Positions 3,238 to 54,300 of a DNA stretch of 64,000 bases are shown one piece after another (within the stretch, counting starts at the first letter, position 1; every line of letters begins with the position of its first letter). The stretch is from sequence record PV764938.1; one strand, 5' to 3'. A program made the translations under genes and the position numbers. Under the pieces are notes generated by a model. The model saw only the letters and a program-made list of their open reading frames with translations, did not search any database and was not told where the DNA came from.

Positions 3238-3426
3238 ATGACACTGAAAACCACCTATTTGCTCATTGCATTTCTCGTCGTCGCCGGCTTTGCTGGTTTC
3301 GTAATGAAGCCCGCGGTTTCAACCGAAGTGAACACCCCATTTAAGGAAGTCAAACTGCTGAAGACTTCGCGTGTGGCTGTTCCGCCGATGTCCGATGAGA
3401 TGCGCAGCCGCCTGTTTGCGAACTAA
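3238..3426 (+). CDS. small membrane/secreted protein
   Basis: Hydrophobic N-terminus; AAGGAGAGG RBS; promoter at 3186. Confidence 0.7.
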   Translation: MTLKTTYLLIAFLVVAGFAGFVMKPAVSTEVNTPFKEVKLLKTSRVAVPPMSDEMRSRLFAN

Positions 3427-3701
3427 TGTCGTTCATCATTCCATCCGATGAGCTCGTTTGTATCGCCGTGTTCAAGAAGGTTCGCGGCGGTATCAACGAG
3501 ATCAAGGCATTCTACAACACTATCCTGTATCACAGTTTCACTTATACGAATCGTGTCGATCTGGAGCTTATTGCGCAGACTCACTTCTACTTTACGTACA
3601 ATCCGGAACGGCATTTTGTCATGGGATTCAGTGACATAAAGACGTTCATGGTGCTCAAACTTGCGTATCCAGAGCTTATTGTGGATGTTTGGTACAAATA
3701 A
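3426..3701 (+). CDS. FKL-motif family small protein (divergent)
   Basis: TAATG coupling; contains GFSDIKTFMVLKLAY. Confidence 0.65.
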   Translation: MSFIIPSDELVCIAVFKKVRGGINEIKAFYNTILYHSFTYTNRVDLELIAQTHFYFTYNPERHFVMGFSDIKTFMVLKLAYPELIVDVWYK

Positions 3702-3744
3702 GGTTGACTCCCAAGACAGACGTAAATAAAGTACAAATACATAT

Positions 3745-3820
3745 GGTGGTCGTAGTGTAGCGGTTAGCACACCAGACTGTGACTCTGTTAGGGCGGGTTC
3801 AAATCCCGTCGATCACCCCA
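3745..3820 (+). tRNA. tRNA-His(GUG) with encoded G-1 and C73
   Basis: 8-bp acceptor G-GTGGTCG / CGATCAC-C-CCA; anticodon loop CT-GTG-AC; GGTTCAAATCC T arm. Confidence 0.93.
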
Positions 3821-3840
3821 AAACAACGCGGAACCCTACG

Positions 3841-4029
3841 ATGGTCAAAACTATTGTCATAGTTCTCGTGTATACTCTGACTTCTCCAGAAGGGAAGACA
3901 GTTGAAAACTTGGCGCTTTACGATAATTGGGATGATTGTCGAGTAAATGAGCGTCGGGTCGAAAATACATTCAAGGTTCCCGCATCTTGTTGGGACTTTG
4001 ATGAATACTACCAAGCAAGAACCCGCTAA
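3841..4029 (+). CDS. small hypothetical protein
   Basis: 62 aa ORF between tRNA-His and HisRS-like gene. Confidence 0.55.
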   Translation: MVKTIVIVLVYTLTSPEGKTVENLALYDNWDDCRVNERRVENTFKVPASCWDFDEYYQARTR

Positions 4030-4043
4030 CCAAGGAGGCGAAT

Positions 4044-4686
4044 ATGCTACGCGGAACTCGTGTAATTTCTGGCAACGAAGCTAGAGCGTATACCAATGCA
4101 ATCGACACCCTCCGAGGTTGTCTTCATCGAAGCTGATTACGAAGAAGTAATTCTGCCGTCTATCTGGGAACAGCAGACGTTCATCGATAAAGCTGGCCCG
4201 GAAATCATCAATCAAATGTGGGCTTTTGCGGATAAGGGCGGACGCGATGTCTGCTTGATTCCCGAAGTCACTGGGCTCGTACAAGAGCTCTGGCGTAACG
4301 AATGGTCCAAGGCCAAGAAAGCACGCCGAATCTTTTATGTGAACCGTTGCTACCGATACGAACGGCCACAAGCTGGTCGTTACAGAGAGTTTACCCAGTT
4401 TGGTGTAGAACTCCTTGGTGGTGATTCGACTACAGATCGTCAAGAAGTAATCGATTTGCTCGACAATTGTTTGAAGCGTATTCCGAATCTCTCCTATGAG
4501 TTTTCGGATGGTGTAAAGCGCGGGCTGTCCTATTATACCGAAGATGGTTTTGAAGTAGAATGTTCGCAGCTTGGCGCGCAAAAGCAGATCGCTGGTGGCG
4601 GTCGTTACGCGGAGGGGATCGGTTGGGCGATCGGAGTGGATCGCCTGATTCTAGCAGCCGAATCAACTACGAGCACGAAGACATAA
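4044..4686 (+). CDS. hisS: minimal histidyl-tRNA synthetase (catalytic core only) with +1 frameshift near 4113-4120
   Basis: AAGGAGG RBS before ATG 4044; frame 1 gives MLRGTRV...DTLR, frame 2 continues VFIEADYEEVILP; motif 2 YRYERPQAGRYREFTQ, RGLSYY, GGGRY, motif 3 GWAIGVDRL; no C-terminal anticodon-binding domain. Confidence 0.85.
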
Positions 4687-5084
4687 CTGTTCAACAGCGG
4701 GTAGCCGAGAAGCTTGCGTTTCTCGGCTATTCTATTGTCTACGTGGATGTCACTGGATTTCATGAACTCTGCCGGTTTTATGAACCTTCCCATATGAGCA
4801 GCATGAATACCTACGGGTTTCTCTGCCTTGAGGAAATGGTTTGGTTTGCGCAGGATTTCGTGTCGGTACTCCGACGAAATTCCCATGAGAACGAACACTT
4901 CCTGGGAATCAAGAACGCATACGGCGAAATCCTTCACGTCGATGAGTTCGGATTAGAGTTTGCGTACTCTTCCTATTATCCGGTGGACCCGTATAGCCCT
5001 GAGCTAGAACTTTGGTTGACAGCGCATCGTAAGCTGTTAGAAGCGCAGGGAAAAGGAATCGAAGATGCAAAAACTCACCCTTAA
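4560..5084 (+). CDS. hypothetical protein (true start probably near 4683)
   Basis: Open frame fills the gap between hisS and the next gene; start unresolved. Confidence 0.5.
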   Translation: MFAAWRAKADRWWRSLRGGDRLGDRSGSPDSSSRINYEHEDITVQQRVAEKLAFLGYSIVYVDVTGFHELCRFYEPSHMSSMNTYGFLCLEEMVWFAQDFVSVLRRNSHENEHFLGIKNAYGEILHVDEFGLEFAYSSYYPVDPYSPELELWLTAHRKLLEAQGKGIEDAKTHP

Positions 5085-5310
5085 AATTGAATATTTTGAT
5101 GGCTCCCACGGGCTGCTCGAACAGTTCTTCGAACGCCAATGGGTTCTCGATCATGCACTGGCTGAACTCGCACTGTTTGGTTTTGTCAGTATCGTTGAGA
5201 TCCAGACAATCGGGCCCATCGAAGTTAAGGTCGCCGAACACGCACAGGATGTTTTGGTTGCCCTGAAGGAAGCGATCGAATCTCATATCGAAATGAGTGC
5301 AGCAGCATGA
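5065..5310 (+). CDS. hypothetical protein
   Basis: 81 aa; overlaps neighbours in operon style. Confidence 0.6.
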   Translation: MQKLTLKIEYFDGSHGLLEQFFERQWVLDHALAELALFGFVSIVEIQTIGPIEVKVAEHAQDVLVALKEAIESHIEMSAAA

Positions 5311-9219: not shown

Positions 9220-9451
9220 AAGCACCACACTTAAACCACTCGAACTCATCATCCCGCTCAGTCTCATGGACGTTGTCGATGGTATGTTCATCCTAAAACG
9301 TGATGTCTACGGTTGGTTGAATGACTTCGGCATATCAACTACTATGAGTCATGCTTGGGTTTGTGACGAGGAAGACTCATATAGTCTAGTCACGACTCAG
9401 GTTTTTGAATCGGAGAGGGACATGATGCTCTTTAAGTTGGCTTTCCTCTAA
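9209..9451 (+). CDS. FKL-motif family small protein
   Basis: Ends QVFESERDMMLFKLAFL. Confidence 0.75.
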   Translation: MAYKSTTLKPLELIIPLSLMDVVDGMFILKRDVYGWLNDFGISTTMSHAWVCDEEDSYSLVTTQVFESERDMMLFKLAFL

Positions 9452-9514
9452 AATTCTGGTTGACGTGTCTTCCTATTCTGCTAATATCAGAACATAGGAA
9501 GACAGGAGACGAAG

Positions 9515-10246
9515 ATGATTCCGACGCGCAACGAAGTAATGGCTTACGCAACTGCAAAGATCGAAGAGATCAAGGCATTCGCAAACACATATTTCGATCT
9601 GCAAATCGGAAGAATGCTCCTCGACATCAACTTCAAGGACACGAATCGTCTCGGCCTCGGCGGTCGCAAAAGTGGTCTGCCGTTCATGCGTCTGAATCTG
9701 GGTCGGCTCGTCAAGTACGAGATTCGCGGCTACAACGAATACGCAACGCTCAACTCCTACGTCGGCATCTCAAGCTTCTACACCACGGATTGGAAGCTGT
9801 GGATCGACGCACTTGTCGCCCACGAATTCGCCCACGTTGTGCAATTCGCGCTTCCGTACTCCACAAGCAACCTGCGGACCGGCGACAAATACTTCAACAA
9901 GCTGGGCCGGTACGAGAACGGTCACGGTCCTTTCTTCCGTGCAATCTACCGGGTTCTGCGTAACAAGTTCGTAAACGATCGGGTTACCGACTGCTATGGT
10001 CCGGTTCCGGTATTCGATATTCCTTCCGACGACATGCAGGAACGTATTGCGGCCAAGGTCGCAAAGCGCGCCAAGCAAATCTCGAAGGATCATCCGCTGA
10101 TGGGCTCGAAGATCCCCTACAAGGGCAAGGTCTACGTGATCAGCGAATTCAACAAGCGTGCGCCCAAGTATGCGCTTGTTGGTGTTGCAGCTTGCGGCGC
10201 TCGTCTCCGTATGCCGGAAAGCTACGCTCTCACACACCGCATCTAA
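9515..10246 (+). CDS. SprT-like zinc metalloprotease
   Basis: HEFAH zinc motif followed by HGPFF; promoter at 9460; AGGAG RBS. Confidence 0.7.
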   Translation: MIPTRNEVMAYATAKIEEIKAFANTYFDLQIGRMLLDINFKDTNRLGLGGRKSGLPFMRLNLGRLVKYEIRGYNEYATLNSYVGISSFYTTDWKLWIDALVAHEFAHVVQFALPYSTSNLRTGDKYFNKLGRYENGHGPFFRAIYRVLRNKFVNDRVTDCYGPVPVFDIPSDDMQERIAAKVAKRAKQISKDHPLMGSKIPYKGKVYVISEFNKRAPKYALVGVAACGARLRMPESYALTHRI

Positions 10247-10306
10247 TATTGACTTTGACACTCCTGGTTCCGTACAATCATCGGAGCATACCAGGAGTGT
10301 CATATC

Positions 10307-10891
10307 ATGGAAATACTTTTCGAGAACAATTTTGACGAGCTGATCGAAACCGCGTGGGCTAATTTCTTTGCCGCCTTTCCGATGGCTCCTTCCTATATGG
10401 GCACTCCTGAGGAAACCAAACCCTACGGCCTCGTCTATACAGGCGGTGGCAAGACCGAACACGGTGAAGCGGTAATCCTGTACGATCCCGAAACTAACCA
10501 TCCCTATGAGATGCTAGTTCGCAGCGTCAAGGACAACGAATCATATCGTTGGGTACATCCGGCGTACTACCGCAAGCGAACCGAGCTCGTTGGTTACCAT
10601 AATCCGTCTACGACGTTAAGCCCGCTCGATGTTGAGGAGAAGTGGCACGAGACGGAATCCATCGAGGATATCATCGACAAGATCGAGAAGATCCTGCGTG
10701 GTGAAGAACATGATCACAAAGTGGTCATCGTGCTGGATCTTGAAGAGCAGCATATTGCGTTCTACGATAAGCTGGCCGAGAAGAAAGGCATCACGCGGGA
10801 TGAGGCCATCGAGTTCACTATCCGAAAGGAACTGACGAAGCTCGACAAAAAGGCGTTTCCGAATGGCCATCCTGATTCCTTTAACCCGTAA
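10307..10891 (+). CDS. hypothetical protein with possible C-terminal ribbon-helix-helix-like segment
   Basis: AGGAG RBS; ends IVLDLEEQHIAFYDKLAEKKGITRDEAIEFTIRKEL. Confidence 0.65.
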   Translation: MEILFENNFDELIETAWANFFAAFPMAPSYMGTPEETKPYGLVYTGGGKTEHGEAVILYDPETNHPYEMLVRSVKDNESYRWVHPAYYRKRTELVGYHNPSTTLSPLDVEEKWHETESIEDIIDKIEKILRGEEHDHKVVIVLDLEEQHIAFYDKLAEKKGITRDEAIEFTIRKELTKLDKKAFPNGHPDSFNP

Positions 10892-17576: not shown

Positions 17577-17915
17577 ATGATATCCTACATTACTGAGTCC
17601 GAAATTCTTAAACTGCCTACGTATGTCTGTGCGCGAACAACTCGTCTCCAATACGAGAACGCCGTGATGATGTGGAACCTGATTCACGACGAGAAGATGG
17701 AAGTCTACGTCTATGATTCCATCTTGGATAAACGGCTGGCCAGTGCTAGGCGCTATGATAGCGAGCATCGACTAACCGTTCACAACTTGATTATTTCGGA
17801 TTATCTTGTATTCGTACATCAGTGGGAACTTATCAAGTGCCGACTCTGCGGAGATTATTCATTCGAGGTCGTGCGCAGCGACAAGGACTATAAACTGGAA
17901 GAGCAAAATGGCTGA
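17577..17915 (+). CDS. hypothetical protein
   Basis: 112 aa ORF in operon. Confidence 0.6.
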   Translation: MISYITESEILKLPTYVCARTTRLQYENAVMMWNLIHDEKMEVYVYDSILDKRLASARRYDSEHRLTVHNLIISDYLVFVHQWELIKCRLCGDYSFEVVRSDKDYKLEEQNG

Positions 17916-18324
17916 AGAAAAAGAAGAACTCAAAATGTGGCTTGTGGTTCGCGGTGATATCGTGATCCCAAAGGGAAAGCTTGCTGCTCAAGCCGGTCAC
18001 GGATTTTGCTCGGCAATGCGTGCGGCACTTGAAAACGATGCCTGGGGCAAAGCGACCGACGAGTCCGGTTACTACGAGGGTGTTGTCGATCGCTACTTCG
18101 AGCAGAACCAGCCCAAGATCACAGTCGTTGCAAAGAATCTCGCAGCCTTAGAGCGTGCCTACAAAGAATGTATGGACGAGATGCTGCCGTGTAGCTTTAT
18201 CATCGATGAGGGCCGTACGGTGTTTCCTGAGCCCACAGCGACTGTGGTTGGGATTGGTCCGTGCCTGCGTAGTGAGCTACCGAAGTTCGTACAGCGTTTT
18301 CAACTGATGAAAGACGACGAATGA
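17908..18324 (+). CDS. peptidyl-tRNA hydrolase, Pth2 type
   Basis: KGKLAAQAGHG, QPKITV, IIDEGRTVF, TVVGIGP signatures of PTH2. Confidence 0.9.
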   Translation: MAEEKEELKMWLVVRGDIVIPKGKLAAQAGHGFCSAMRAALENDAWGKATDESGYYEGVVDRYFEQNQPKITVVAKNLAALERAYKECMDEMLPCSFIIDEGRTVFPEPTATVVGIGPCLRSELPKFVQRFQLMKDDE

Positions 18325-20218: not shown

Positions 20219-20293
20219 TGCGGTGAGGACAACGGGTAAGTCACGAGCCTCATAAGCTTGGGAACCGGGTTCAACTCCCGGCACACGCAACCA
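20219..20293 (+). tRNA. tRNA with CAU anticodon (Met, fMet or Ile2 unresolved)
   Basis: CGAGC-CTCATAA-GCTTG anticodon arm; GGTTCAACTCC T arm; CCA; one bulged A in acceptor; U1-A72 and A11-U24 but no triple G-C anticodon stem. Confidence 0.85.
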
Positions 20294-26461: not shown

Positions 26462-27598
26462 ATGGTTACCCAAAATATTTTGAACTTTCTCGCTGATTAC
26501 CGAGAGGACGGACCAGTCCTAGTTGTTGATCTTAATACTGTTCGTGAGAACTTTGAATCATTTAGGGTATCCCTCCCGGATAGTAAAGTCTACTATGCCG
26601 TCAAGGCCAACCCTGACCCAAAAATCCTCCAGATGCTCGCGGACAACGGTTCTTCCTTTGACTGCGCCAGTGTACCAGAAATCATGATGGCGCTTAATGC
26701 GGGTGCTTCTGCGGATCGGATTTCCTACGGCAACACCATTAAAAAGGAACGTGATATCGCCAAGGCATTTTCCCTGGGCATCCGTTTGTTTGCTGTGGAC
26801 TCAACAGAGGAAGTCACAAAGGTAGCTAAAGCTGCCCCTGGCTCTAAGGTGTTTTGTCGCATTCTAACAAGCGGAGCAGGTGCTGATTGGCCACTATCCC
26901 GTAAATTCGGATGCACCACAGCAATGGCCGTCGACGTTCTTGTTGACGCCAATAAGCAGGGTTTGATCGCCTACGGTGTATCATTCCATGTGGGTTCTCA
27001 GATGACAAATCCCGATGGTTGGAACGAAGCAATTGGCGAGGCCAAGGACATTTTCGATGAGACCGCGAAGCACGGTATCGAGTTGAAACTCGTAAATCTT
27101 GGCGGTGGTTTCCCTACACGTTACCTCAAGGATGTTCCAAGCAGCGCCGACTATGGCCACGCAATTCGTGCATCGCTTGCGCATCACTTTGGGAATAACA
27201 TTCCGGAAACCATCATTGAGCCAGGTCGTGGTATGGTCGGCAACGCTGGTGTTCTACGTTCGGAAGTCGTGTTGATCTCTCGCAAGTCCGATGCTGATGC
27301 GCACCGTTGGGTGTTCTTGGATATCGGCAAGTTCGGTGGTCTAGCTGAGACGATGGAAGAAGCAATTCGTTATCCGATCTTCTCGATTCGTGACGAAGCC
27401 GCAAAGGGTCCATGTGTTCTTGCGGGTCCAACTTGCGATTCCGCAGACGTGCTTTATGAGAAGCAGATGTACGCGCTGCCAGAGACTCTGGAGATCGGCG
27501 ATTACCTCTACTTTGATTCCGCTGGCGTTTATACGACAACCTACAGTGCGGTTGCATTCAACGGCTTTGAGCCTTTGCGCAGCTTTGTAATTGACTAG
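26462..27598 (+). CDS. PLP-dependent ornithine/lysine decarboxylase (type III fold, eukaryote-like ODC family)
   Basis: YYAVKANP (PLP Lys), FDCAS, SFHVGSQ, NLGGGF, EPGR, GPTCDSAD, GVYT. Confidence 0.93.
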   Translation: MVTQNILNFLADYREDGPVLVVDLNTVRENFESFRVSLPDSKVYYAVKANPDPKILQMLADNGSSFDCASVPEIMMALNAGASADRISYGNTIKKERDIAKAFSLGIRLFAVDSTEEVTKVAKAAPGSKVFCRILTSGAGADWPLSRKFGCTTAMAVDVLVDANKQGLIAYGVSFHVGSQMTNPDGWNEAIGEAKDIFDETAKHGIELKLVNLGGGFPTRYLKDVPSSADYGHAIRASLAHHFGNNIPETIIEPGRGMVGNAGVLRSEVVLISRKSDADAHRWVFLDIGKFGGLAETMEEAIRYPIFSIRDEAAKGPCVLAGPTCDSADVLYEKQMYALPETLEIGDYLYFDSAGVYTTTYSAVAFNGFEPLRSFVID

Positions 27599-30199: not shown

Positions 30200-30814
30200 A
30201 TGAATCCTACCGCTCTCGTGCCGATGGTCGTCGAACAGACACACCGTGGCGAACGTTCCTACGACATCTACTCGCGTCTTCTCAAGGAACGCATTGTCTT
30301 CCTGACCGCGCAGGTCGAAGACCACATGGCAACGCTCATTTGCGCTCAGCTGCTCTTCCTCGAAGCTGAAGATCCGAAGAAGCCAATCGCCATGTACATC
30401 AATTCACCGGGCGGCGTCGTAACCGCTGGTATGTCGATCTACGACACGATGCAGTTCATTTCGGCTCCGGTTCACACCATCGTTATGGGCCAGGCTTGCT
30501 CGATGGGTTCGTTCCTCGCAAATGCCGGCGCTCCTGGTCACCGTTACATGCTGTCCAACGCACGTCACATGATCCACCAGCCCTCTGGCGGCGCCCGCGG
30601 CCAGGCCACCGACATCAAGATTCAGTACGAAGAAATTCAGAAGATGAAGGTGTCGCTGACCCAGACCTACGTCAAGCACAACTCGAAGGGTAAGACCTTC
30701 GAAGAAATGCTCGCCGACATGGAACGCGACTACTTCATGAGCGCAGAAGAAGCTCTCGCTTATGGTCTTTGCGACCGCGTGATCAGCTCGCGTTCGGAAG
30801 TCGAATCCGAATAA
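30200..30814 (+). CDS. clpP: ATP-dependent Clp protease proteolytic subunit
   Basis: [39 protein letters not shown] (Ser), MIHQP (His), ERD (Asp). Confidence 0.96.
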
Positions 30815-30894: not shown

Positions 30895-31842
30895 ATGAGA
30901 CGGAACACCTTTCACTATTACCGTGGTATCATCCACCCCTATAAGTCCAATACTGGAAACAACAGTGTCAAGCTTATCACTGCGGGTGGTTATTACAGTA
31001 GTGCGACCCAAATATCGGTAGACGGTATCAATTGGCAACCAACAACCACTGGAGCCAATGGCGCATATAATGCTGTGTATTGCGGCAAATACAAAACTTT
31101 CGTTGTTTGTGGTCCTGGATTCATTCGTGTCTATAATGCGGAGAATCTAGCAGCGGCACCAACCGTGGTAACACTTCCATCCGGTTATGCAAATGGTGCG
31201 TCCATTGCATACCATCCTCCCACGGGCAATGTGGCAATCGCTAATTTTGGTGGTGGCAACTCACACTATTCGACAAATGGTGGCTATACCTGGACCTCAA
31301 CCACTGCAATTGGTTCGTCAGATATGATGACCTACAACTACGACAATGGTGACCTAGTTCAAGTTACCCGAGACGGTAGCATGGGTCGTAGTTCAAACGG
31401 CGGGGTAAGTTGGGTCACTATGACTGGACCCGCTGCATCCACCCGCTTGGGAGTTGCTTATGCGTTTGGGAAATATTGGGTCACAAGTCTTGGCTCATCC
31501 AGCATTTATTGGACCAACAATAACGGAGCATCGTGGACACCAGTAGATGTAGGCAATGCAACCTCGCGTATTCACTTTGCTAAAGAAGCGAACATCCTGT
31601 TTGCTGCTTATGGTGCCGGTGTAACTTACACGAACAATGGTACTACTTGGCAAAATTCATCGTTGCCTCCGGGTTCTGCAGGTTCTAGAAGCCTTGGATA
31701 TTCCCCAACGGTCGGTCGCTTCTACGTGGGCACAACAGGCGAAGCCTATATGAGCAGTGACATGTTAACGTGGTCCGCGATGGCTGGCACCGCAAGTTTC
31801 GACCACTATGCGTTCGCGGTAGCTGATCCCCTTTTTGTTTGA
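30895..31842 (+). CDS. Asp-box/BNR beta-propeller protein, paralog of 21299-22261
   Basis: SVDGINW, STNGGYTW, SSNGGVSW, TNNGTTW repeats; TAAATA at 30864. Confidence 0.7.
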   Translation: MRRNTFHYYRGIIHPYKSNTGNNSVKLITAGGYYSSATQISVDGINWQPTTTGANGAYNAVYCGKYKTFVVCGPGFIRVYNAENLAAAPTVVTLPSGYANGASIAYHPPTGNVAIANFGGGNSHYSTNGGYTWTSTTAIGSSDMMTYNYDNGDLVQVTRDGSMGRSSNGGVSWVTMTGPAASTRLGVAYAFGKYWVTSLGSSSIYWTNNNGASWTPVDVGNATSRIHFAKEANILFAAYGAGVTYTNNGTTWQNSSLPPGSAGSRSLGYSPTVGRFYVGTTGEAYMSSDMLTWSAMAGTASFDHYAFAVADPLFV

Positions 31843-31883
31843 CGTATTCCGATTCTGTGTTAGAGTGCGACAAAGGAGATCCT

Positions 31884-32642
31884 ATGAGAATCAAGATTGT
31901 CGCATCGCCCGCACCACTGGCACGTGAAGCCCATGCTGAGGTTTGTGGCCGGTACAAATGTGTGGAAGACATCAAGGACGCTGACGTTCTCGTAGTGCTC
32001 GGCGGTGATGGTACAATGCTCCATGCAATCCACACCTATATGGAATACGGGCTGCCCATCTACGGGATGAACCGAGGCCACGTTGGCTTTCTCCTCAACG
32101 AATACGACCCCAATCATCTGGATGAGAAGCTTGAAGCTGCCGTCGATACGATCGTGCATCCGCTTCGCACTCGGATCCAAACGACTGGCGGCATTTGGGA
32201 TCCATTGGCGATCAACGATGTCTCGATCACTCGCCAGTCGGGCCAAGCTGCCAAGCTCAAGATCAGTGTTGCTGGACAGGTTCGCATTGAGGAACTCATC
32301 GGCGATGGTCTAATTGTTTCGACACCAGTCGGTTCCACCGCTTACAACCGATCGGCTGGCGGGCCAATCCTTCCGCTTGAAGCACCACTGCTCGCGGTTA
32401 CTCCGATTTGTGCGTTCCGTCCTCGGCATTGGAAGGGAGCAATCATCCCGGACAATCTGCAAGTGGACGTCGAAGTGCTTGAGCGAGAAAGTCGCGGCGT
32501 GATGGTTGCGGCGGACTCCTTTGAAGTCAAAGATGTTATAAGTGTATCGGTGGCTCCGGACCATTCCAAGAAGGTTCATATTTTGAGTGATCCGGGTCGC
32601 TCGTGGTCCGATAAACTTTTGAGCGAGCAATTCTATGGCTAA
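31884..32642 (+). CDS. nadK: NAD kinase
   Basis: VLGGDGTML, GHVGFL, AINDV, GDGLIVSTPVGSTAYNRSAGGPI. Confidence 0.95.
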   Translation: MRIKIVASPAPLAREAHAEVCGRYKCVEDIKDADVLVVLGGDGTMLHAIHTYMEYGLPIYGMNRGHVGFLLNEYDPNHLDEKLEAAVDTIVHPLRTRIQTTGGIWDPLAINDVSITRQSGQAAKLKISVAGQVRIEELIGDGLIVSTPVGSTAYNRSAGGPILPLEAPLLAVTPICAFRPRHWKGAIIPDNLQVDVEVLERESRGVMVAADSFEVKDVISVSVAPDHSKKVHILSDPGRSWSDKLLSEQFYG

Positions 32643-37256: not shown

Positions 37257-37949
37257 ATGTCTCAGAGCAAACAGATTTTCCTCCAGTCCCTCGGGCTGGC
37301 ACTAATCCTCACATCTTTCACATACCTGGTAAGTGTTTTGGTCGGCTGGACTCATCCGAGTCAGCTGAACTGGCTCGAATTTTTCGCAGTCTTCACAAGC
37401 TATTCCTGCACTTATATGTGTGTGCGCCAGTCGCGCTGGAACTATCCAATGGGCGTCCTGACAACGTTCATCTACAGCTGGTTCTATTGGACCGCTCAGC
37501 CTGAGCCGGCAACTGCACTGGCTATCTTCAATCTCTACCTGGTCTTTTCGTTGATGTTCGGCTACTGGCGCTGGGGCCCGGATGGTAACCCGCGTACGGT
37601 ATCACGTGTTGAATCCAAGTGGTGGGTCGGCTATGTGAGTCTCGGACTTGTGATCGCCGCTCTCATGTGGATCGCTTTGCAATTCGGTGCAAAGATCTCC
37701 AACTTGGAAATCGGAATCGTGATCCTTTCGGGTGTTGCCCAGTTCCTCTTAGACAACAAAAAGATTGAGACTTGGGCCGTTTGGATTGTAGTTAATATTC
37801 TAAGTATCTACTTCTACTGGACAGTCGGCTGGTACCTCGTTATGTTCCAATACGTGTTCTTCCTGGCCAATGCTTTCTGGGGCCGATACGAATGGCTGAA
37901 GTCGATGAAGGAAGCACCACAAGCATTCGGACGACAGGTAACAGCATAA
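37257..37949 (+). CDS. pnuC: nicotinamide riboside transporter
   Basis: Multi-pass membrane protein; QSRWNYPMG, GYWRW, AQFLLDNKKIETWAVWIVVN, GRYEW; upstream of nadR. Confidence 0.88.
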   Translation: MSQSKQIFLQSLGLALILTSFTYLVSVLVGWTHPSQLNWLEFFAVFTSYSCTYMCVRQSRWNYPMGVLTTFIYSWFYWTAQPEPATALAIFNLYLVFSLMFGYWRWGPDGNPRTVSRVESKWWVGYVSLGLVIAALMWIALQFGAKISNLEIGIVILSGVAQFLLDNKKIETWAVWIVVNILSIYFYWTVGWYLVMFQYVFFLANAFWGRYEWLKSMKEAPQAFGRQVTA

Positions 37950-38158
37950 TGGGATTGAAACGGCAATATCGCATCGAACGACACAGTCACAATCGTTGGT
38001 TCATTCAATGGTCGTGGATGGGTATGTTCTGGTCCTATCTGATGGACTCCCGCTATTACAACAGCAAGCACGAGTTTAGATCCGAACGCGAAGCCGAAGT
38101 CTTCATCAACGATATGATCAAGGCTCGCACCTCGGACATCAAGAAAGTCTACAAGTAA
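37949..38158 (+). CDS. hypothetical protein
   Basis: 69 aa; TAATG coupling. Confidence 0.6.
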   Translation: MGLKRQYRIERHSHNRWFIQWSWMGMFWSYLMDSRYYNSKHEFRSEREAEVFINDMIKARTSDIKKVYK

Positions 38159-38159
38159 A

Positions 38160-39212
38160 ATGCCAAGAGATATGAACGGTCTGATCATCATGACCGCCCT
38201 AGTGCCTACCATTGGCCACCGATTTCTCATCGAAACTGCCGCAGAGGTAATGGATCAGAATTTCGGACTATTGCATGTCATCGTGTTTGACCGTTCATTT
38301 GAGCCTATCAAAGGAAGCCTCAGAGCTTCTGCGATAAAAGAACAGTTCGCACACATGCCCTGGGTGCGCGTATACCATCACGTCGATGATGGGGCTCCAC
38401 AGAACGACGATGGTACCCAGGAGTTCTGGGACTATTGGTGTGAACTGGCCCGAGATATCACTGGAGAGGAAACTTTCCAATATGTGTTTGCGAGTGAGGC
38501 CTACGGCAACACCTACGCAAATCAACTCGGTGCAAAATTCATTCCCGTTGACATCGATCGCGAAGTCTACGCGGTCAAGGGCACCAACGTTCGCCGCAAT
38601 CTTAATTATGGTTTCGGCGATGTAATGCCGGCGTTCAAGAAGCACTTGGCTCGTCGCATCGTATTTTTCGGTGCTGAGTCCACCGGTAAGACCACACTCT
38701 CGAAAATGTTCGCCACCGACAACCGATATGGTGGAAAGTTCCTTCCGGAATGGGCGCGACCCTACTTGGAGCGTTTCGGTCCAGACGTGACTGATGAGCG
38801 GATGGAAAATATCACGCTTACTCAGTATGCGACACAGAAGTCGGTTATTGCTTCGCTGGATCGTCCCTGGATTTTCCAGGACACTGACCTGTTGAGCACC
38901 ATCGGTTACTATCGCATTTATGGTGGCAAGCATGATGGCCACATCGAAAACCTCTACAGGGAAACCAAGGGTCATCTCTACATCGTGATGAACTCGGGCA
39001 TCAAGTTTGCTCCTGATCCACTTCGTTATGGTGGCAATGTTCGTGAATCCACTGATCAGTTTTGGATTGATCTCCTTGAGGAATACGGCTGCAACTATTA
39101 CGTCGTGAAGGACAAAGGTTCAGCAATGTCTCAGTTCCATGAGATTGCTGAAGTGGTTGCGGATTTTCAAAGTTCCACATATAAGGAACTAGCTAATTTT
39201 GAGAGGGATTGA
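38160..39212 (+). CDS. nadR: NadR-like NMN adenylyltransferase / ribosylnicotinamide kinase (no HTH)
   Basis: PTIGH nucleotidyltransferase motif; FASEAYG; P-loop GAESTGKTTL; PEWARPY; DTDLLST. Confidence 0.9.
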   Translation: MPRDMNGLIIMTALVPTIGHRFLIETAAEVMDQNFGLLHVIVFDRSFEPIKGSLRASAIKEQFAHMPWVRVYHHVDDGAPQNDDGTQEFWDYWCELARDITGEETFQYVFASEAYGNTYANQLGAKFIPVDIDREVYAVKGTNVRRNLNYGFGDVMPAFKKHLARRIVFFGAESTGKTTLSKMFATDNRYGGKFLPEWARPYLERFGPDVTDERMENITLTQYATQKSVIASLDRPWIFQDTDLLSTIGYYRIYGGKHDGHIENLYRETKGHLYIVMNSGIKFAPDPLRYGGNVRESTDQFWIDLLEEYGCNYYVVKDKGSAMSQFHEIAEVVADFQSSTYKELANFERD

Positions 39213-45222: not shown

Positions 45223-45705
45223 ATGGACCAGCACGATTTAGCAACGAAACAAGCACAAACCGAAAACTGGTTCCATGGCCGTGGCAAGCTTGTCTACGAC
45301 CCCGTTCGGCCCGGCTTGAAATCCAAGAACAAATGGTGGGTTGTCGTCGAGTTGGATCGCGGCATTACCGATTACTACCGTTGGTGGGTCAACAAGGAGA
45401 TCCTCAATCCTCTGGGGTTCGAACGCAAAGGTCTTCAAATGCCAGCGTGGGGCGCGCACATGAGCATTGTCCGTGGTGAACAGCCACGTCCTGACAAGCT
45501 GCATCTGTGGAACAAATACAACGGCGAGATCGTTGACTTCCGTTACCATTATGTGGTGCGTCAGTCCGGTGATACCACAGGCGGCGATCGCCCTGATGTG
45601 TTTTGGTTCGTGGATTCCATTTGCGCCAAGGGCAAAGCTCTGCGTGATGAGCTTGGTTTCCGTAGCAATTGGAAATTCCACATCACTGTTGGAAGAACCT
45701 ATTGA
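45223..45705 (+). CDS. 2H phosphoesterase
   Basis: Two HxS/T motifs: GAHMSIV and KFHITVG. Confidence 0.7.
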   Translation: MDQHDLATKQAQTENWFHGRGKLVYDPVRPGLKSKNKWWVVVELDRGITDYYRWWVNKEILNPLGFERKGLQMPAWGAHMSIVRGEQPRPDKLHLWNKYNGEIVDFRYHYVVRQSGDTTGGDRPDVFWFVDSICAKGKALRDELGFRSNWKFHITVGRTY

Positions 45706-48337: not shown

Positions 48338-51300
48338 TTAGTTGATTTTCTTGATGAATACTGCGCCAGCTTCCTGAACAAGGTTTGCACCAAGTGCATC
48401 GTAATCCTGGCCAGGAGCGCCCACAATAAGCGCACCCTTTGCATCCAAAGCAACTGCATGACCGAACAAGTCCTCTGGGTGACGACCGTTTGTCATTTCA
48501 GTACCAGCTTCGTCGGAGAAGCCTGCAATCTTCTCCTTGAGAGCCCATGTAGCATTCGAAGCATCCAACGCAAAGACGTAAGTTGCACCAGCGTTGGTCA
48601 TTGGGTTCTCACCATCTGCATCTGTGGACGCCATAGCGGAGCCTACCGCAATGTATCCGCCAGCCACAGCCAGTGTTTTACCAAATACTTCACCAGCATC
48701 TGGAGTCACTGTGAGCGTCTGTGTGAGTGTTAGGGTTTCGCCGTCGAATGCAAAGATGTGAACCGCGTTTGCGCCGGGTTCGCCAACAACCACTGTGTTG
48801 GTCTTTTCATCAATACCAACGGTTTCACCGAAACGACCATCCACAATACGCGATGGGCTTGTGAACTTGGCAACCATTGGGAACTGTGTGTTCTTCAGGT
48901 AGATCCAAATTGCACCAGCGTTCGAGAGTTCCAGGTCACCCGTAACGTCGAAGTCGTATTGCGGAGAACCGATGACCACGAAGTTCTTGTTTGCGGATAC
49001 CGAGTAACCGAACCAATCACCAGCGTTACGACCACGTGCCAAGCCCTGTGCGGAGAATGTACCACGGACGAACCAGTCTTCACCAACACGCTCGTAAGCC
49101 TGGACAATACCAGAGTTTGCGACCTGTGGAGCACCTGGAACGTTGTTTGCATCCGGAACACCAACAACGAACTTGTTCGTGTCAGCAGCCGCAACCGCAG
49201 CACCGAAGCGGCCATTGGTTGCACCGTTGCCGGTGTAGTCCTTCCGAGCTACCCAGTTACCTTCAGCTACGCGCTGGAATACACGGGCAAGACCTGTATC
49301 GTTGGTGTAATTGCCTGTGATGATCCAACCGTTTCGGCCAGACAATGTGCGACCGAAACCAATCGGAGCCGTTGCATCTGGAACGATTTTAGATTCTGTG
49401 TTCCACTTGTCGCCGGTCTTATTGTAGACGAACAGCGCACCACTCTTGCTCGTTGCGTTACCATAGAGGTCATAGCTGTGGAACGGAGAACCGACAACCA
49501 CGAAGTCGTGATTCGCGTAAACGGAGTAGCCGAACTGATCGCCAGCAGCACGACCATTTGAGCGACCGGGAACCGAATAATCCGCGTTTGCGTCTGTGAG
49601 CGAACCATTCGAGTTGATCGTGAAGGTCTTTGCACGACCAGCACCCGAAAGCGCAGGCTGTGGACCAACACCCTGGGAAGCACCACTGTCGAGTTCGATA
49701 AGTCGTGTACCGCTTACGATCTCTGCGACCTTACCTGCACCAGCCTCGATGTGACGGGCAATTGTCCAAGCACCGTTTGTTGCTGTGAGTTCGACCATCT
49801 TCGCTGCATCGTTAGTACCGGCATAGAGCTTGTCACCGATTAGCTTCAATGTCTTACCGTAGCCGAGCAATTCCGAGTTTGTTTCCAAGTTGAGTTTTTC
49901 ACGGAATGTATAGGTTGCGCCCTTCTTGTCGAATACGAAGATTGCACCCTGACCATCACGGAAGTTGACACCGTTGTTGCCGTAATCGTGACCAGGAGCA
50001 CCAACCAGGATCTGTGTTGGTGTAACTTCAACAGCCGAACCGAAGAGATCCGATGCAAAGCGACCGTGGGAAACACCATCACCAACAATAGAACCCGCGC
50101 TTGTGAGCGTTGGAACCGTGATGTCGAATGTTGTGAAACCACCCGAGTTGGAGACTGTTGGCTTGACACCATCTGTATTACGACGTGTCTGACCCAGTAC
50201 AATCTTATCACCGACCAATGTAAGCGAGATACCCAAATCAACAGTCGCTGTAAGCGTTGTCTTTGCTTGGCTTACGAAGTTGCTGCCGTCGAACGCGAAC
50301 AATTCCACAGCATTTTTGTCTGGGCTACCAGCGAATGTCGGAACCTCAAGCGTTGCAATCGAGGAGTACGGCTGCGAACCGAGAACCAACAGGTTGTTGT
50401 CGTTGACTTCCAGAGCAAAGCCGAAGTAATCGGCATTTGTTGCCTTGGACGATGTGATCTTCTGGATAAGCTGCCACTTACCGTTGATGCGCTTGTATTC
50501 AAATACCGCACCCGAGTTAGCTGGAAGTGGATCGCCGCTGGAGTCATATTCGTGACCAGGAGCACCAACGTAAATCTGATTCTCATCCTTGATACCAACG
50601 GCATGACCGAAGAAGTCTGTAGCCGAACGGGAGTTGATGATACCAGGAGCCACAACAGCATCGGAATCCAAGAGTGTTTCGAGAGTCGTTGCAACGTCCT
50701 TGATGACTTCGTAACCACCCGGACGACCGTCCAGCGTAAATGTCGCAGTACGTGTCGAACCGCCACCACCACCACCGGCAATTGCTAGGAAGTCGTTGCC
50801 ACGAGCAATACCCGCGAGACCACCACCACAACCAGCGCCATCAATAGCCGTGTTCAGCGAGCGGCCGCCTAGACCACCAAGACCATACTTGCGGTTCTGA
50901 TTTCGGTTAGAGAGGTCCGTACCGATTTGTCCACCAGCACCACCACCGCCGACTACGATCTTGAGCTCTTCGCCTTCTGTGACGCTAAGAGTACCTGTTA
51001 CGAATGCACCTGCACCGCCGCGACCACTACGACGTGTTGCCCAACCCGAAGCATGGTTTGCAGCACCACCACCAGCGCCCCAAAGCGCAACTGTGATTTC
51101 AGTTACACCAGCTGGGACTGTGAAGGTCTGGTCAAAGCCCGTGTAGTTGAATACCACGTCTGTTGTACCGTGTGTGATTACGACACGAGCGTCTTCACCG
51201 ATTGCACCAACAGTATTACCGCCAGCGCCAGTTGCGTTTGCATTTGCCGAGTTTGCACGAGCTGCACCCAAGCTGAGGATCTGCGAGCCACCGTTTGGAA

Positions 51301-54300
51301 CCAAGTTAGAACCACCCTGGCCACCTGCACCGAAGTTGGTGTTGAATGCACCACCAGCGCCACCACCGATGTAACCGGCACCACCACCGCCACCGGCGGA
51401 TGTTGCCGCGGAGTAAGCTTCAGCATCAGCACCTGCATTGATACCGCGCGAACCACCCCATACGTTTCCGTTCAGGACTCGTGTACGGATTGCACCGCTC
51501 TGAGTAACACTTGGGTAACCGTTTGCTGTTGGCTTTGCCATGACCAATGCGTTGCCGTCCAGTGTCAGAATAGCATTCGTCAGGGTGTTTTCCATCGTTG
51601 CGGATGTGTCGATCTTCCAGAAACGGTCATCTACGAGCTTGTAAACGAACACGCGATCAACGTTTGGAATTGCAACAGCGAGCTTACCATCGACCCAGCT
51701 CAGGTTCATCGCGGATTGCGAAGCTCCCGAAACAGGATTTACAAAGTGGCTGTGATACTCGAACATACTCTTTGGTGTATTCCAACGATAGACGAATACC
51801 TTACCCCAAGTGTTCTGACCAGCGACTTGGAATGTGGTTGCGCTGTGCATGAACTGAACGTCGTTATGCGAACCAATTGCAAGCATCGAACCATCTGGAG
51901 AAAGTGCAAGTCCAGTCTGACCGAAACCAGCGTTTGAGCTCATGTAAACGTGAGAAAGCTCGTTTACGCCATTCGAGTTGACAGTCTGTGTTACCACACC
52001 AACGTTGCTAACCGCGAATGAATCAGTACCCTCGGTGTAGTTGATCGGGATAGCAGCACCAAAAGCGTTAGCCGTTCCCGTATTAAAGTTACCGTTAGTC
52101 GCACCGAGCATACCCTGCAAAGTTTCCTTATCCCAAGCTGCACGGGTCTGTGATACTTGAGCTGTAGCGGTGAGAGTAGCAGCCGCAGTCGATGTCAACG
52201 GAGTACCAAATTTGCCAGCACCATCACGCTTGAATACAACTGGTGTTTCACGGTTGCTGTTAACGTAGAGATAATCATCATTCAAACCAACGAACAGACC
52301 GTAGTTTGTAACTGCTGGTGCGTTTTCGAATGTGATCTTCTGATCGTAATAGAAACGTTCGTCTTCGGCCAACTTATATGTGTAGACTGCACCGCGGTTT
52401 GTTGTGAATGATACACCAGTAGTGTTCCAATCGTAACCAGGAACACCAACTGCCAATGCGCCATTGTGAATTGCCACGGAGTAACCGAAGTTATCACCAG
52501 CATTACGATTGTTGATGTTGCCTTCGTTCGTGTAAACTGTACGGGCGCGAGTGCTTGCCAACACCGTCTCGAAAATACCCGAAGCGATGGAGTTTACCGT
52601 GCGCAAAGGCGAACCCGAGTAGTACATGTCACGAACTGAATCATAAGCTAGACCAGTGCCAAAAGCCTGAGTACTCGTCGTGCCATTCATTGTAAACGTG
52701 TCAGTCCACGTCGAAGTAATGCCGATGTTGCCCTGAGCAAAACGTGTAAATGCACCGTTATTGCCATTGTTATACGCGCTGGTGATAAAGAAATCGTTGT
52801 TATACTCATTGAGGACACGTCCGAAGAACGCATTCGAAGTGGACAAGGTTTCGATAACCTTGGTGTTCAGACGCCACTTGTTTGTATCAGTGTCCAGGTA
52901 ATAGACAAACACTGCACCCATATTTGACGATGTATTTGCAGTCGAATCAACACGATATACGTGAGTCGGAGCACCAATCATCAGGATGTTCTTATTGCTA
53001 TTCAGCTTGACAGCGGTACCAAATGCGTCGTTGGCATTACGACCGTATGCGATGTTTGCATTCGAACCATAAACGATTGTGCCCTTCTCATAAGCACCAT
53101 TCGTGTGCAGGGGAACAGCGTTATCTGTTCCCTTTGTCCAAGTAGAACCAGAACGATTGAAGTCTGCGAAGCTACCAGCAGCCAACTGAACGTTTGTGCT
53201 TGGCGACCATGTGGTGCTACCACCAACAAACTTGTCATCAGAGAACAATGCACCAGAGTACATGTTTCGGCCACCAGCAGAGTTGTTGATGCGCGACTCG
53301 AATGTTGCGGTTGTTCCATCGAACGTGTATGTCGCAGCCTGCGATACTGCATTGCTCGAATGCAGAAGAATACGGTTTCCACGCATACCAACTCGAGAAC
53401 CCCAGAATTGGCTTGAGGAATCGGTCGCTGGGTTTGTCAATAGTGTCTTGAAAGTCCAAACGCCTTGTTCGTTCTTTTCGAAGATTGTACCAGCACCCAT
53501 GTTTGTGCGTGTTGCGGAGCCACCGTCAATCTTGTTGTACTGTGGGATACCAATAACGACACGACCATCCTTGACGACCAACGATGTAGCGAAGAAGCCA
53601 TTGCCAACACGGTCATCTACCGCAATATTGGTTGGTTTGTAGCTGACACTATCCACGTTATATGTGCCATCGACATCCTGAGTGTAGTGACGGGCGTAAC
53701 CAACTCCGGTCTTAGCACCATCAACAGCATCTGGCGAACCCGTAATAAAGTTGGCCTCAGTGCTGAAGAAACGAGCACTATTGTAGACGAATGGATCGTT
53801 GGTGTTGCTTTCGCTGAAACGCTCCAGGAATACATAACCGTTTTCGCCCTTCTTGAACACTTCAACGCCAGCATTTGTTGTCGTTGTCTTAGAAATCAAG
53901 TAGTCGCCCTTGATGTCGAAGGACAGACCGAACGCCTGCGATCCTCCAAGAACCGACGGCAAGATGAGTTCCTTTTCATCCCAACCCTGCAGAAGCGCAT
54001 TGTATTCGTAACGGTGAATACCACCCATGTTGACATGAACGTTATTGTTGTTTGGTGTCTGTCGGTTACCATAAGCGCCTACAAATACCGAAGTTCCATC
54101 AGTTTTCACATCATAGCCAAAGTAATCGTTGGCGATTTTGTTGTTGCTCGCCGAACCCGGATATGTGAATGTCTGAGTGTATGTGTATTCGTTTGTGCCG
54201 TTCCATACAAGCGGAGCAATATAACCGCTTGATGTGTTGTCCCAATCCGGATTTACGCGGACACCATTGGAGATCGAGTAATAGAGTTGATCTCCCAAAT

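Follow-up and report, generated by a model that had tools for sequence, protein, structure and literature searches.

Why does a phage carry a histidyl-tRNA synthetase (HisRS) of half the usual size, close to its own tRNA-His, in a gene that is broken into two reading frames at a histidine codon? The question is raised by a locus of Sinorhizobium phage Phosso (PV764938.1, a circular genome of 469,473 bp), which lies in the 64,000-nucleotide stretch of DNA analysed here (the window); window coordinates are those of the record (100% identity over bases 3400-5200). Our literature search found no paper on phage Phosso. A preliminary description, made from the letters of the window alone, had taken positions 3745-4686 for a possible orthogonal pair of a tRNA-His and a mini-HisRS, and had treated the break in the synthetase gene as something to be corrected. 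That view of the break is not borne out: it is a conserved +1 cassette at a His codon, and it is the most informative feature of the locus. We propose, with moderate confidence, that the best explanation of the locus is a self-contained histidine module in which a +1 shift like that of release factor RF2 would give negative feedback on charged tRNA-His.

The frame break as a conserved +1 cassette

The tRNA gene and the two parts of the synthetase gene are arranged as follows (ORF, open reading frame).

3745-3820, plus strand: tRNA-His(GTG), identified by ARAGORN (3746-3820), Rfam (59 bits) and direct reading
4032-4038, plus strand: ribosome-binding site AAGGAGG, by direct reading, 5 nt before the ORF1 start codon
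4044-4136, plus strand: ORF1 of the mini-HisRS gene, MLRGTRVISGNEARAYTNAIDTLRGCLHRS, from ATG 4044 to the stop TGA 4134-4136
4114-4127, plus strand: +1 cassette, made up of a Shine-Dalgarno (SD)-like GAGGT (4114-4118), TGT (4119-4121), CTT (4122-4124) and the His codon CAT (4125-4127)
4126-4686, plus strand: mini-HisRS body in the +1 frame, 186 codons ending in TAA 4684-4686, with zero His codons

The start codon of ORF1 lies 223 nt past the tRNA-His. Codons 1-27 of ORF1 encode MLRGTRVISGNEARAYTNAIDTLRGCL, an N-terminal helix that aligns with the N-terminus of in-frame homologues, and in the 0 frame they are followed by H-R-S and the stop TGA at 4134-4136. Joined to the body from 4126, they give a product of 213 residues with the predicted trans-frame junction GCL-IEADYEEVILPSIWEQQTFIDK, which begins GCL-IEADYEEV. 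The preliminary description had reported a HisRS of about 213 residues some 220 nt downstream of the tRNA, and both this protein and all the motifs quoted for it are found. The record annotates only a body of 196 residues, as a coding sequence at 4096-4686 named 'histidyl-tRNA synthetase', from an internal ATG.

Related loci drawn from viral and metagenome contigs (given here by L numbers) provided 27 distinct split genes and 16 unsplit ones. All 27 split genes shift by +1 at [C/G]TT CA[T/C], and the cassette never varies at the five bases from +1 to +5, which read T, T, C, A and Y and start with the second base of the slip codon. Among the 26 distinct cassette sequences the slip codon and the next base are CTT_C in 18 and GTT_C in 8, and the A-site codon is CAU, which is wobble-read, in 22. 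A 0-frame stop stands directly after CAY in 14 of the 26 and 1-10 codons later in the rest. At L006 the body frame opens just 5 nt ahead of the ORF1 stop, and the shift is therefore confined to GTT CAC TGA.

Upstream of the slip codon, and ending 3 nt before it, lies the SD-like element (GGAGG, AGGGGG, GAGGT, AGGTG or GGGAG), with G prevailing at positions -8, -7, -5 and -4 of the cassette. The energy of its duplex with the anti-SD sequence at the 3' end of 16S rRNA averages -8.3 kcal/mol at the sites, compared with -2.7 kcal/mol in 4,166 in-frame control windows from the same genes. Energies of -6 kcal/mol or below are found at 81% of the sites and at 14% of the controls (Mann-Whitney p = 1.6e-12, indicative only, as the sequences are related); the value for the Phosso cassette is -7.1 kcal/mol.

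The selected frame changes at the same place. Upstream of the slip the ratio of non-synonymous to synonymous differences (pN/pS) is 0.57 in the ORF1 frame versus 0.95 and 1.27 in the other frames, and downstream of it 0.26 in the body frame versus 1.67 and 1.39; purifying selection thus swaps frame at the slip. At many loci the body frame contains no ATG, GTG or TTG before codon +31, and the body can therefore not be made alone. Taken together, the sequences make it very probable that the mini-HisRS could be expressed only through the frameshift.

The cassette is specific to this family and is found widely within it. In 606 kb of phage loci, cassette-like sites with CAY fall in mini-HisRS genes in 23 of 23 cases, and at least 80 of the 120 closest database proteins bear the footprint of the +1 frame (GGxF[IT] or F[IT]) at a mis-called N-terminus. 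Both the record and the searched protein collection begin the gene at an internal or out-of-frame codon, and most members of the family are therefore likely to be mis-annotated at the N-terminus. The slip codon is found at five positions, 16, 17, 21, 25 and 69 from the RGTR motif, with the length of the N-terminal part kept. The L020 cassette sits within the conserved motif VCL|IPE, and in a tree of the single-frame body L020 stands beside the unsplit L014 and L025, in a clade with L028, which has the common site. This placement points to repeated gain and loss of the cassette. That the motif arose or moved several times in huge phages, and also serves as a gauge of His-tRNAHis, is a joint claim to which we would give an even chance.

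A HisRS catalytic core without its accessory domains

Profile and structure analyses were carried out with the body, with ORF1 and with natural in-frame homologues such as P0016. The Phosso body contains YRYERPQAGRYREFTQ from 4351, KRGLSYY at 4516-4536, GGGRY at 4594-4608 and GWAIGVDRL (motif 3) at 4621-4647, together with ILPSIWEQQTF, DKGGRD with the glycines of the G-1 pocket, CLIPEVTG, and motif 2 with its loop. KRGLSYY, GGGRY and YRYERPQAGRYREF are, like the residues that contact ATP, histidine, C74, A76 and G-1, invariant or nearly so in the family, the contact residues being invariant throughout. Pfam matched PF13393 (E = 2e-21) and PF00587. The NCBIfam hisS profile (TIGR00442) gave 142.5 bits for the Phosso body and 154.7 bits for P0016, as against 84-98 bits with hisZ; both profiles score below their cut-offs (286.75 for TIGR00442), as expected because the protein is of half length.

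An AlphaFold2 model was made for P0016, an in-frame homologue 77% identical to the Phosso protein, from an alignment of 44 sequences, and has a mean predicted local distance difference test score of 91.8. Its best Foldseek matches were the catalytic domains of E. coli (1KMM) and Thermus thermophilus (1ADJ) HisRS, with TM scores of 0.86-0.88, and HisZ ranked below HisRS. Pfam, the model and Foldseek all indicate a class II catalytic fold with motifs 1, 2 and 3. P0016 aligns only with residues 6-153 and 244-315 of T. thermophilus HisRS and therefore lacks both the insertion domain, at about 154-243, and the anticodon-binding domain at the C-terminus, 316-421, as the preliminary description had noticed. 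No anticodon-binding Pfam domain was found in the mini-HisRS, the 11-residue loop before motif 3 is deleted and the protein ends about 10 residues past that motif. These profile and model results identify the predicted product as a HisRS class II catalytic core and not as HisZ.

In the complex of T. thermophilus HisRS with tRNA, Glu114, Arg115, Arg120 and Arg122 of the motif-2 loop hold the acceptor end, and the Gly72-Gly73 of the G-1 pocket is supplied by the other subunit (PMC4357726). The counterparts of all these residues are kept in Phosso, in ERPQAGRYREF and DKGGRD. We think there is good reason to expect that the mini-HisRS would charge the G-1:C73 tRNA-His.

The histidine codon and histidine-poor products

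Split genes without exception encode Ile or Thr as the residue that follows the slip, and the 0-frame codon is therefore always CAU or CAC. The residue at the matching position of unsplit homologues is T, R, F, I, V or K. Were Arg or Lys encoded there by AGR or AAR, the 0-frame codon would be CAG or CAA, for Gln, and these are never seen in split genes; indeed, the A-site codon of split genes is never CAA or CAG, CGN or CCN.

The products of the 27 split genes contain a single histidine in 5,607 residues, and the Phosso product contains none. The background is 2.66% in neighbouring ORFs and 1.03% in 27 full-length HisRS; the loci L043-L105, mostly full-length HisRS from a metagenome scan, were used only as this control of His content. 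As the products are nearly free of histidine, the His codon at the slip site is the only one that a ribosome meets on the mRNA. An enzyme free of histidine whose synthesis is gated by a His codon fits a device that works at His-tRNAHis shortage.

The phage tRNA-His and its relation to the host pair

The Phosso tRNA-His, which the record also annotates (3746-3820), is of the conventional bacterial type. Direct reading places an encoded G-1 at g3745, with +1 at 3746, opposite C73 at c3817, as the preliminary description had it. The acceptor stem GTGGTCG/CGATCAC has 7 pairs and includes G1:C72, the anticodon GUG lies at 3779-3781 and A37 at 3782, the D loop has 8 nt and CCA is encoded at 3818-3820. 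In the closest relative of Phosso (L004/L005, enzyme 93% identical) the same G-1:C73 tRNA-His lies at 2146-2222 and is encoded without CCA (CTC follows C73).

The recorded host of Phosso is S. meliloti NRRL L-50, in keeping with the Rhizobiales host that had been presumed. Rhizobiales belong to the RRCH group, in which tRNA-His lacks G-1 and has A73 and HisRS has diverged (PMC3064791, PMC3937112), with the Gln of the motif-2 loop lost (PMC3937112). The mini-HisRS keeps the conventional loop, ERPQxGRYREF, with the Gln included. We read tRNA-His genes from Rhizobium, Mycoplana, metagenome-assembled genomes of Rhizobiaceae, Brucella, Mesorhizobium, one member of the Caulobacterales and one of the Rhodobacterales. 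The base at -1 is T, A or C in every one of them, and they share G1:U72, A73, G37 and a D loop of 9 nt, which in the RRCH type includes U20a; the Phosso tRNA differs from them by its G-1, C72, C73, A37 and 8-nt D loop. Together with the literature, these genes match the earlier statement that Rhizobiales, Caulobacterales and Rhodobacterales have lost G-1, use A73 and have an altered HisRS.

The losses measured for Caulobacter crescentus HisRS were 91-fold for U72C, 5-fold for an added G-1 and 250-fold for E. coli tRNA-His (PMC3064791), and a conventional pair of HisRS and tRNA-His from E. coli is orthogonal in Caulobacter in vivo (PMC3875453). In a Rhizobiaceae host the tRNA-His is G-1-less and carries U72 and A73, and the HisRS of the host depends on the anticodon and on U72.

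Some related phages carry a tRNA-His of the host type as well. In five of them such a gene (T at -1, G1:U72, A73 or U73, G37) adjoins the mini-HisRS.

L009, 4343-4418: G-1-less tRNA-His
L011, 3979-4054: G-1-less tRNA-His
L012, 4275-4348: G-1-less tRNA-His
L016, 4372-4447: G-1-less tRNA-His
L110, 4572-4644: G-1-less tRNA-His

A G-1:C73 tRNA-His is also present in four of these five loci. Two types of tRNA-His are what is expected if the host enzyme serves one and the phage enzyme the other, and the G-1-less genes are likely to mark the host group of these five phages. No second, host-type tRNA-His was detected in Phosso by BLAST with the G-1-less phage tRNA-His genes, at the sensitivity of that search, and the tRNA content of Phosso was examined over 64 kb of the 469-kb genome. 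The same query run against plasmids in search of the host tRNA-His gave nothing useful.

In a Rhizobiaceae host with such a tRNA-His and HisRS, the phage pair would therefore probably be orthogonal and provide a private supply of His-tRNA. On the sequences and on the analogy with Caulobacter, we lean towards orthogonality to the host pair. The preliminary proposal thus stands as far as the G-1:C73 tRNA, the conventional motif-2 loop and the G-1-less RRCH tRNAs are concerned; the family itself is not specific to Rhizobiales, and the suggested tolerance of variation in the anticodon loop found no support.

Proposed mechanism

From this anatomy we infer that frameshifting takes place and responds to His-tRNAHis, that the enzyme charges the phage tRNA-His and that the pair is orthogonal to that of the host. 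After 27 codons of the Phosso gene, peptidyl-tRNA-Leu would lie on CUU, with the SD-like element 3 nt upstream and CAU in the A site. In the family as a whole the P-site tRNA would be tRNA-Leu(GAG) on CUU or tRNA-Val(GAC) on GUU, with the anti-SD paired 3 nt upstream. With ample His-tRNAHis, CAU would be read and translation would terminate three codons on, leaving a peptide of 30 residues. If His-tRNAHis is scarce, the A site would stay empty and the P-site tRNA would re-pair to UUC, exchanging a G34:U wobble for G34:C, so that the ribosome would continue in the +1 frame and make the synthetase. As the enzyme has no histidine, it could be completed during the very shortage of His-tRNAHis that calls for it. 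By way of its conventional motif-2 loop and of G-1:C73, the enzyme would then charge the phage tRNA-His. The rate of frameshifting would fall again, which constitutes negative feedback. On the sequence evidence, we consider it likely, if less so than the charging itself, that the cassette senses His-tRNAHis.

Alternative explanations

Several points weigh against the reading of the locus as a self-regulating and orthogonal histidine module. The choice of CAY is partly forced, the C being needed for the tRNA to re-pair with UUC and the two bases after it for coding Ile or Thr in the new frame; the constraint on the His codon therefore rests on the residues that vary in unsplit homologues. Unsplit members are also mostly free of histidine; His avoidance therefore predates the frameshift and is no proof of sensing. 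It is a trait of the family, one large part of which gained the frameshift later. One sense codon pauses the ribosome less than a stop codon does, and the dynamic range may be small. The SD-like element is absent in 2 of the 26 distinct cassette sequences (L015 and L032), slip positions 16 and 17 could have a single origin with an indel, and the sequences are related by descent, so that counts and p-values overstate independence. The enzyme has Gln at the position of the essential Glu64 of T. thermophilus, Ile for Arg in LRPEGT and no insertion domain to clamp the acceptor stem, and its activity could be low or altered. As regards orthogonality, the tRNA type of S. meliloti NRRL L-50 is taken from family-level data and the literature. 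Moreover, in an AT-rich clade of uncultured phages (L002, L003 and L124-L127) the family is unsplit and a conventional tRNA-His lies nearby. The mini-HisRS did not clearly evolve for orthogonality.

The alternative that survives best, although we consider it unlikely, is that the +1 shift is real and needed but constitutive. A one-base insertion at a Leu-Ile dicodon would have been rescued by slippage, the SD-like stimulator would have come later and the His codon would be a by-product through which nothing is sensed. The cassette is within easy reach of such an event: a single inserted C turns CTT ATT GAA into it (CTT ATY to CTT C ATY), the unsplit P0082 reads ...SCLIENGY at the same place, and the C and the A-Y that follow also serve re-pairing and the coding of Ile or Thr. 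The translational correction of problem indels is recognised in a recoding review, which counts for this alternative (PMC5009743). However, a one-base deletion would restore a plain ORF, and the cassette has nonetheless persisted at five positions while synonymous sites diverged to saturation (pS 0.7-0.8), with unsplit genes nested among split ones. A constitutive shift also leaves it unexplained that the A-site codon is never CAA or CAG, CGN or CCN although the matching residue varies freely in unsplit homologues, that the protein is free of histidine, and that, as in RF2, the 0 frame meets a stop immediately or no more than a few codons later.

It is improbable, at a lower level again, that the mini protein does not charge tRNA and is instead a HisZ-like regulator, or forms His-AMP for another acceptor or a signalling nucleotide. 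The missing insertion and anticodon-binding domains, the 142 bits against a hisS cut-off of 287, the Gln at the position of T. thermophilus Glu64, the Ile for Arg in LRPEGT and the S, T, G or P that some distant members have for the R of GGGRY all agree with such a role. Against this, the hisS score lies far above that of hisZ, the contacts to ATP, histidine, C74, A76 and G-1 do not vary across the family, and the gene repeatedly adjoins tRNA-His genes in loci that are tRNA arrays. When E. coli HisRS is cut down to an N-terminal catalytic fragment, it can still charge tRNA in a G-1:C73-dependent manner. Engineered HisRS core fragments of 119-145 residues activate histidine (PMC3060492). HisZ has no adenylation activity and is a partner of HisG (PMC9437257), and no HisG is annotated in window positions 1-59000. 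Identity with HisZ was therefore rejected, on the lower hisZ profile score (84-98 versus 142-155 bits), the retained catalytic residues and the neighbourhood of tRNA genes.

Very improbable is quadruplet decoding, in which a phage tRNA whose anticodon loop is enlarged would read the four bases CUUC or GUUC and so bring about the shift. ARAGORN does report tRNAs with 2- or 4-base anticodons at L012, L017 and L022, but none of these anticodons fits CUUC or GUUC, and the gene at L017 (aagg) is unsplit. Two slip codons would need two such tRNAs, ARAGORN found none in the Phosso window, and the SD-like stimulator at RF2 spacing indicates P-site slippage. Two other routes to the same product were rejected. 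Transcriptional slippage does not agree with the Phosso site, where there is no homopolymer, and a model that places His in the P site and the stop in the A site fails, as CAY has no stop beside it in 12 of the 26 distinct cassette sequences and as the spacing of the SD-like element suits [C/G]UU in the P site.

We give still less credence to ORF1 and the body being two polypeptides, with the SD-like element serving as ribosome-binding site for (re)initiation at AUU or AUC past the slip site. The element does lie at a workable spacing, about 7 nt before the body-frame AUY, but four loci have ACU there, which is not a start codon, and many have no canonical start before codon +31. In addition, ORF1 has its homologue in an N-terminal helix that unsplit members carry fused to the rest, ORF1 is under purifying selection, and helix residues 10-29 lie within the folded core of the P0016 model.

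Finally, the record annotates only the 196-residue body and starts it at an internal ATG, which could speak for a pseudogene or for an error in sequencing or assembly. This reading is refuted for practical purposes: the same break is found in ENA and Logan assemblies, made independently, of a relative with 93% identity (L004/L005) and in 27 distinct genes, both parts are under purifying selection, and the site is not a homopolymer run.

Comparison with known systems

The closest parallel to the proposed histidine module is the RF2 (prfB) site, which has an ORF1 of about 26 codons, GG_GGG or GG_AGG, a 3-nt spacer and CUU_UGA (PMC5009743). The mini-HisRS gene shares the short ORF1 with a long +1 ORF, the re-pairable slip codon CUU and the SD-like element 3 nt upstream; as in RF2, the A-site codon is decoded by the activity that the gene supplies, and a dead-end peptide results when that activity is abundant. 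Unlike RF2, the A-site codon is in all cases the sense codon His CAY and not UGA, and because of this the cassette is a variant of the RF2-type site and not a strict member. The quantity proposed to be sensed is an aminoacyl-tRNA and not a release factor, re-pairing would be on UUC (G34:C) and not on UUU, GUU is accepted as slip codon and the cassette is found at several positions in the gene. Both kinds of site occur side by side at L021 (IMGVR_UViG_3300020429_000539, 488 kb), where the mini-HisRS has CGGAGG CGT CTT CAT and, about 5 kb away at 9931-10552, a gene with PCRF and RF-1 domains has the canonical RF2 site CAGGAG CGT CTT TGA. From its domains and site, we read this gene as a phage RF2.

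In Ty1 (CUU_AGG_C) and at 'hungry codons', too, a P-site tRNA-Leu slips on CUU before a sense codon that is slow for want of its aminoacyl-tRNA (PMC5009743). The slow codon of Ty1 is, however, a constitutively rare Arg codon and its output is a Gag-Pol ratio. In the mini-HisRS the codon is cognate to the enzyme made, which would close a feedback loop, and an SD-like stimulator is added. Charging of tRNA-His is read for the control of histidine-related genes elsewhere: in the his leader, ribosomes pause at His codons in a short ORF, and the hisS T-box binds uncharged tRNA-His. Those systems act by transcription termination or antitermination, whereas the output of the mini-HisRS cassette would be a change of frame in the coding sequence, and its leader ORF, unlike that of his, doubles as the N-terminus of the enzyme.

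The enzyme resembles the HisRS of E. coli (1KMM) and T. thermophilus (1ADJ, 4RDX) in its fold (TM 0.86-0.88), in motifs 1-3 and in the histidine-binding motifs, and keeps the bacterial motif-2 loop ERPQxGRYRxF and the glycines of the G-1 pocket. It differs from them in being half the size, without the insertion and anticodon-binding domains and the 11-residue loop, in having Gln for T. thermophilus Glu64, and in the replacement of the His of RHERPQ and FHQ, the whole mini-HisRS being His-free. In consisting of the catalytic core only it is comparable with the engineered HisRS fragments or urzymes, in which histidine activation is kept (PMC3060492). Those are laboratory constructs, whereas the mini-HisRS is natural, is under purifying selection and has thousands of members in large phage genomes. 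Like HisZ, it is a HisRS paralogue without an anticodon-binding domain; unlike HisZ, it keeps the catalytic residues, scores higher on hisS and sits among tRNA genes. The phage pair, finally, recalls the E. coli pair in C. crescentus, a conventional G-1:C73 pair beside a G-1-less host pair (PMC3064791, PMC3875453). That arrangement was engineered, whereas the phage appears to use orthogonality naturally and with a minimal enzyme.

Family and genomic context

A length-restricted protein search returned 2,518 cluster representatives of the mini-HisRS, and the best 120 of these have 155-281 residues, are 63-93% identical and in many cases lie on contigs of 250-580 kb. The family is thus large and at home in huge phages. 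Among deposited phage records, close relatives are confined to Phosso and two uncultured phages of 635-642 kb, and PHROGs holds no family for the mini-HisRS. In 13 of the loci read a tRNA-His lies within about 1.5 kb of the mini-HisRS, often directly adjoining it, and the gene stands in tRNA arrays.

Further features of the Phosso locus are the following.

3704-3732, plus strand: sigma-70-like promoter, TTGACT-17 nt-TAAAGT, a consensus match just 5' of the tRNA-His
3841-4029, plus strand: ORF13, 62 residues, 'hypothetical protein 13' in the record, between the tRNA-His and the mini-HisRS
4699-4742, plus strand: terminator-like hairpin with a 15-pair stem and a T-rich tail, 13 nt past the HisRS stop, a consensus match only
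4623-5084: annotated ORF of 153 residues, overlapping the last 64 nt of the mini-HisRS in another frame

The promoter-like and terminator-like sequences, both of them consensus matches only, flank the tRNA-His, ORF13 and the synthetase. The promoter search found 1 site where shuffled sequences lead one to expect 2.4, and hence only its position is suggestive; we regard 3704-3732 as a candidate start of a putative transcription unit of tRNA-His, ORF13 and mini-HisRS. ORF13 had no match in Pfam or PHROG searches, and L004, the closest relative, has a different gene of 220 residues at its site. The ORF at 4623-5084 was considered as a detached anticodon-binding partner and rejected: neither Pfam nor PHROG gave a match for it, and in the closest relative it is not conserved.

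The module is set among small ORFs and tRNA genes that lie scattered through the region. A tRNA-Met(CAT) at 20219-20293 (Rfam, 38 bits) is annotated in the record and was missed by ARAGORN. A PTH2-type peptidyl-tRNA hydrolase (PF01981, 84 bits) lies near tRNA genes at 17908-18324, and the product of 45223-45705, annotated as 'RNA ligase', has as its sole match a 2H phosphoesterase domain below the Pfam cut-off; these are further translation or RNA-repair functions close to tRNA genes. Elsewhere in the window the minus strand carries two giant ORFs annotated as hypothetical proteins, one of 9,489 nt (48338-57826) and one of at least 11 kb (57900-64000), which exits the window. The record also annotates auxiliary metabolic genes within 26462-27598, 31839-32642 and 37257-39212 (ornithine/lysine decarboxylase, NAD kinase, nicotinamide mononucleotide (NMN) transporter and NMN adenylyltransferase) and a ClpP protease subunit at 30200-30814.

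In the two uncultured phages of 635-642 kb, RNA ligase genes flank the unsplit mini-HisRS (L002 4782-5495; L003 3232-3897 and 4779-5492), with PF09414 confirmed for L002 4782-5492 and L003 3232-3894, which suggests a context of tRNA repair. The 578-kb contig L011 has, on the minus strand at 9367-9441 and 9448-9523, two tRNAs with the amber-reading anticodon CTA, labelled tRNA-Pyl by ARAGORN, and these may serve stop-codon reassignment or suppression. The tRNA-like genes with 2- or 4-base anticodons, L012 4185-4267 (gc), L017 462-544 (aagg) and L022 7385-7452 (ac), may have odd anticodon loops or be mis-calls.

Implications

Full-text searches, a comprehensive recoding review of 2016 and a survey of jumbo-phage genomics contained no report of an aminoacyl-tRNA synthetase controlled by frameshifting at its cognate codon, or of this mini-HisRS family. 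We see about equal grounds for and against the claim that this is the first natural synthetase gene under +1 frameshift at its own cognate codon and, with it, a minimal HisRS of 213 residues that charges tRNA without insertion and anticodon-binding domains. If so, the principle of a self-measuring frameshift known from RF2 would be extended to synthetases, as a simple natural sensor of tRNA charging, and the same logic might apply to other synthetases encoded by phages. A natural HisRS of about 210 residues that is widespread and kept by purifying selection is a real-world counterpart of the engineered urzymes and catalytic fragments that are used in arguing the origins of synthetases. The mini-HisRS and its tRNA are a candidate orthogonal pair for alphaproteobacteria, and the 14-nt cassette is a candidate tunable switch. 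For the phages themselves, our results suggest that huge phages may secure the decoding of one amino acid independently of the host and, in Rhizobiales and their relatives, by means of a pair that may lie beyond the host system.

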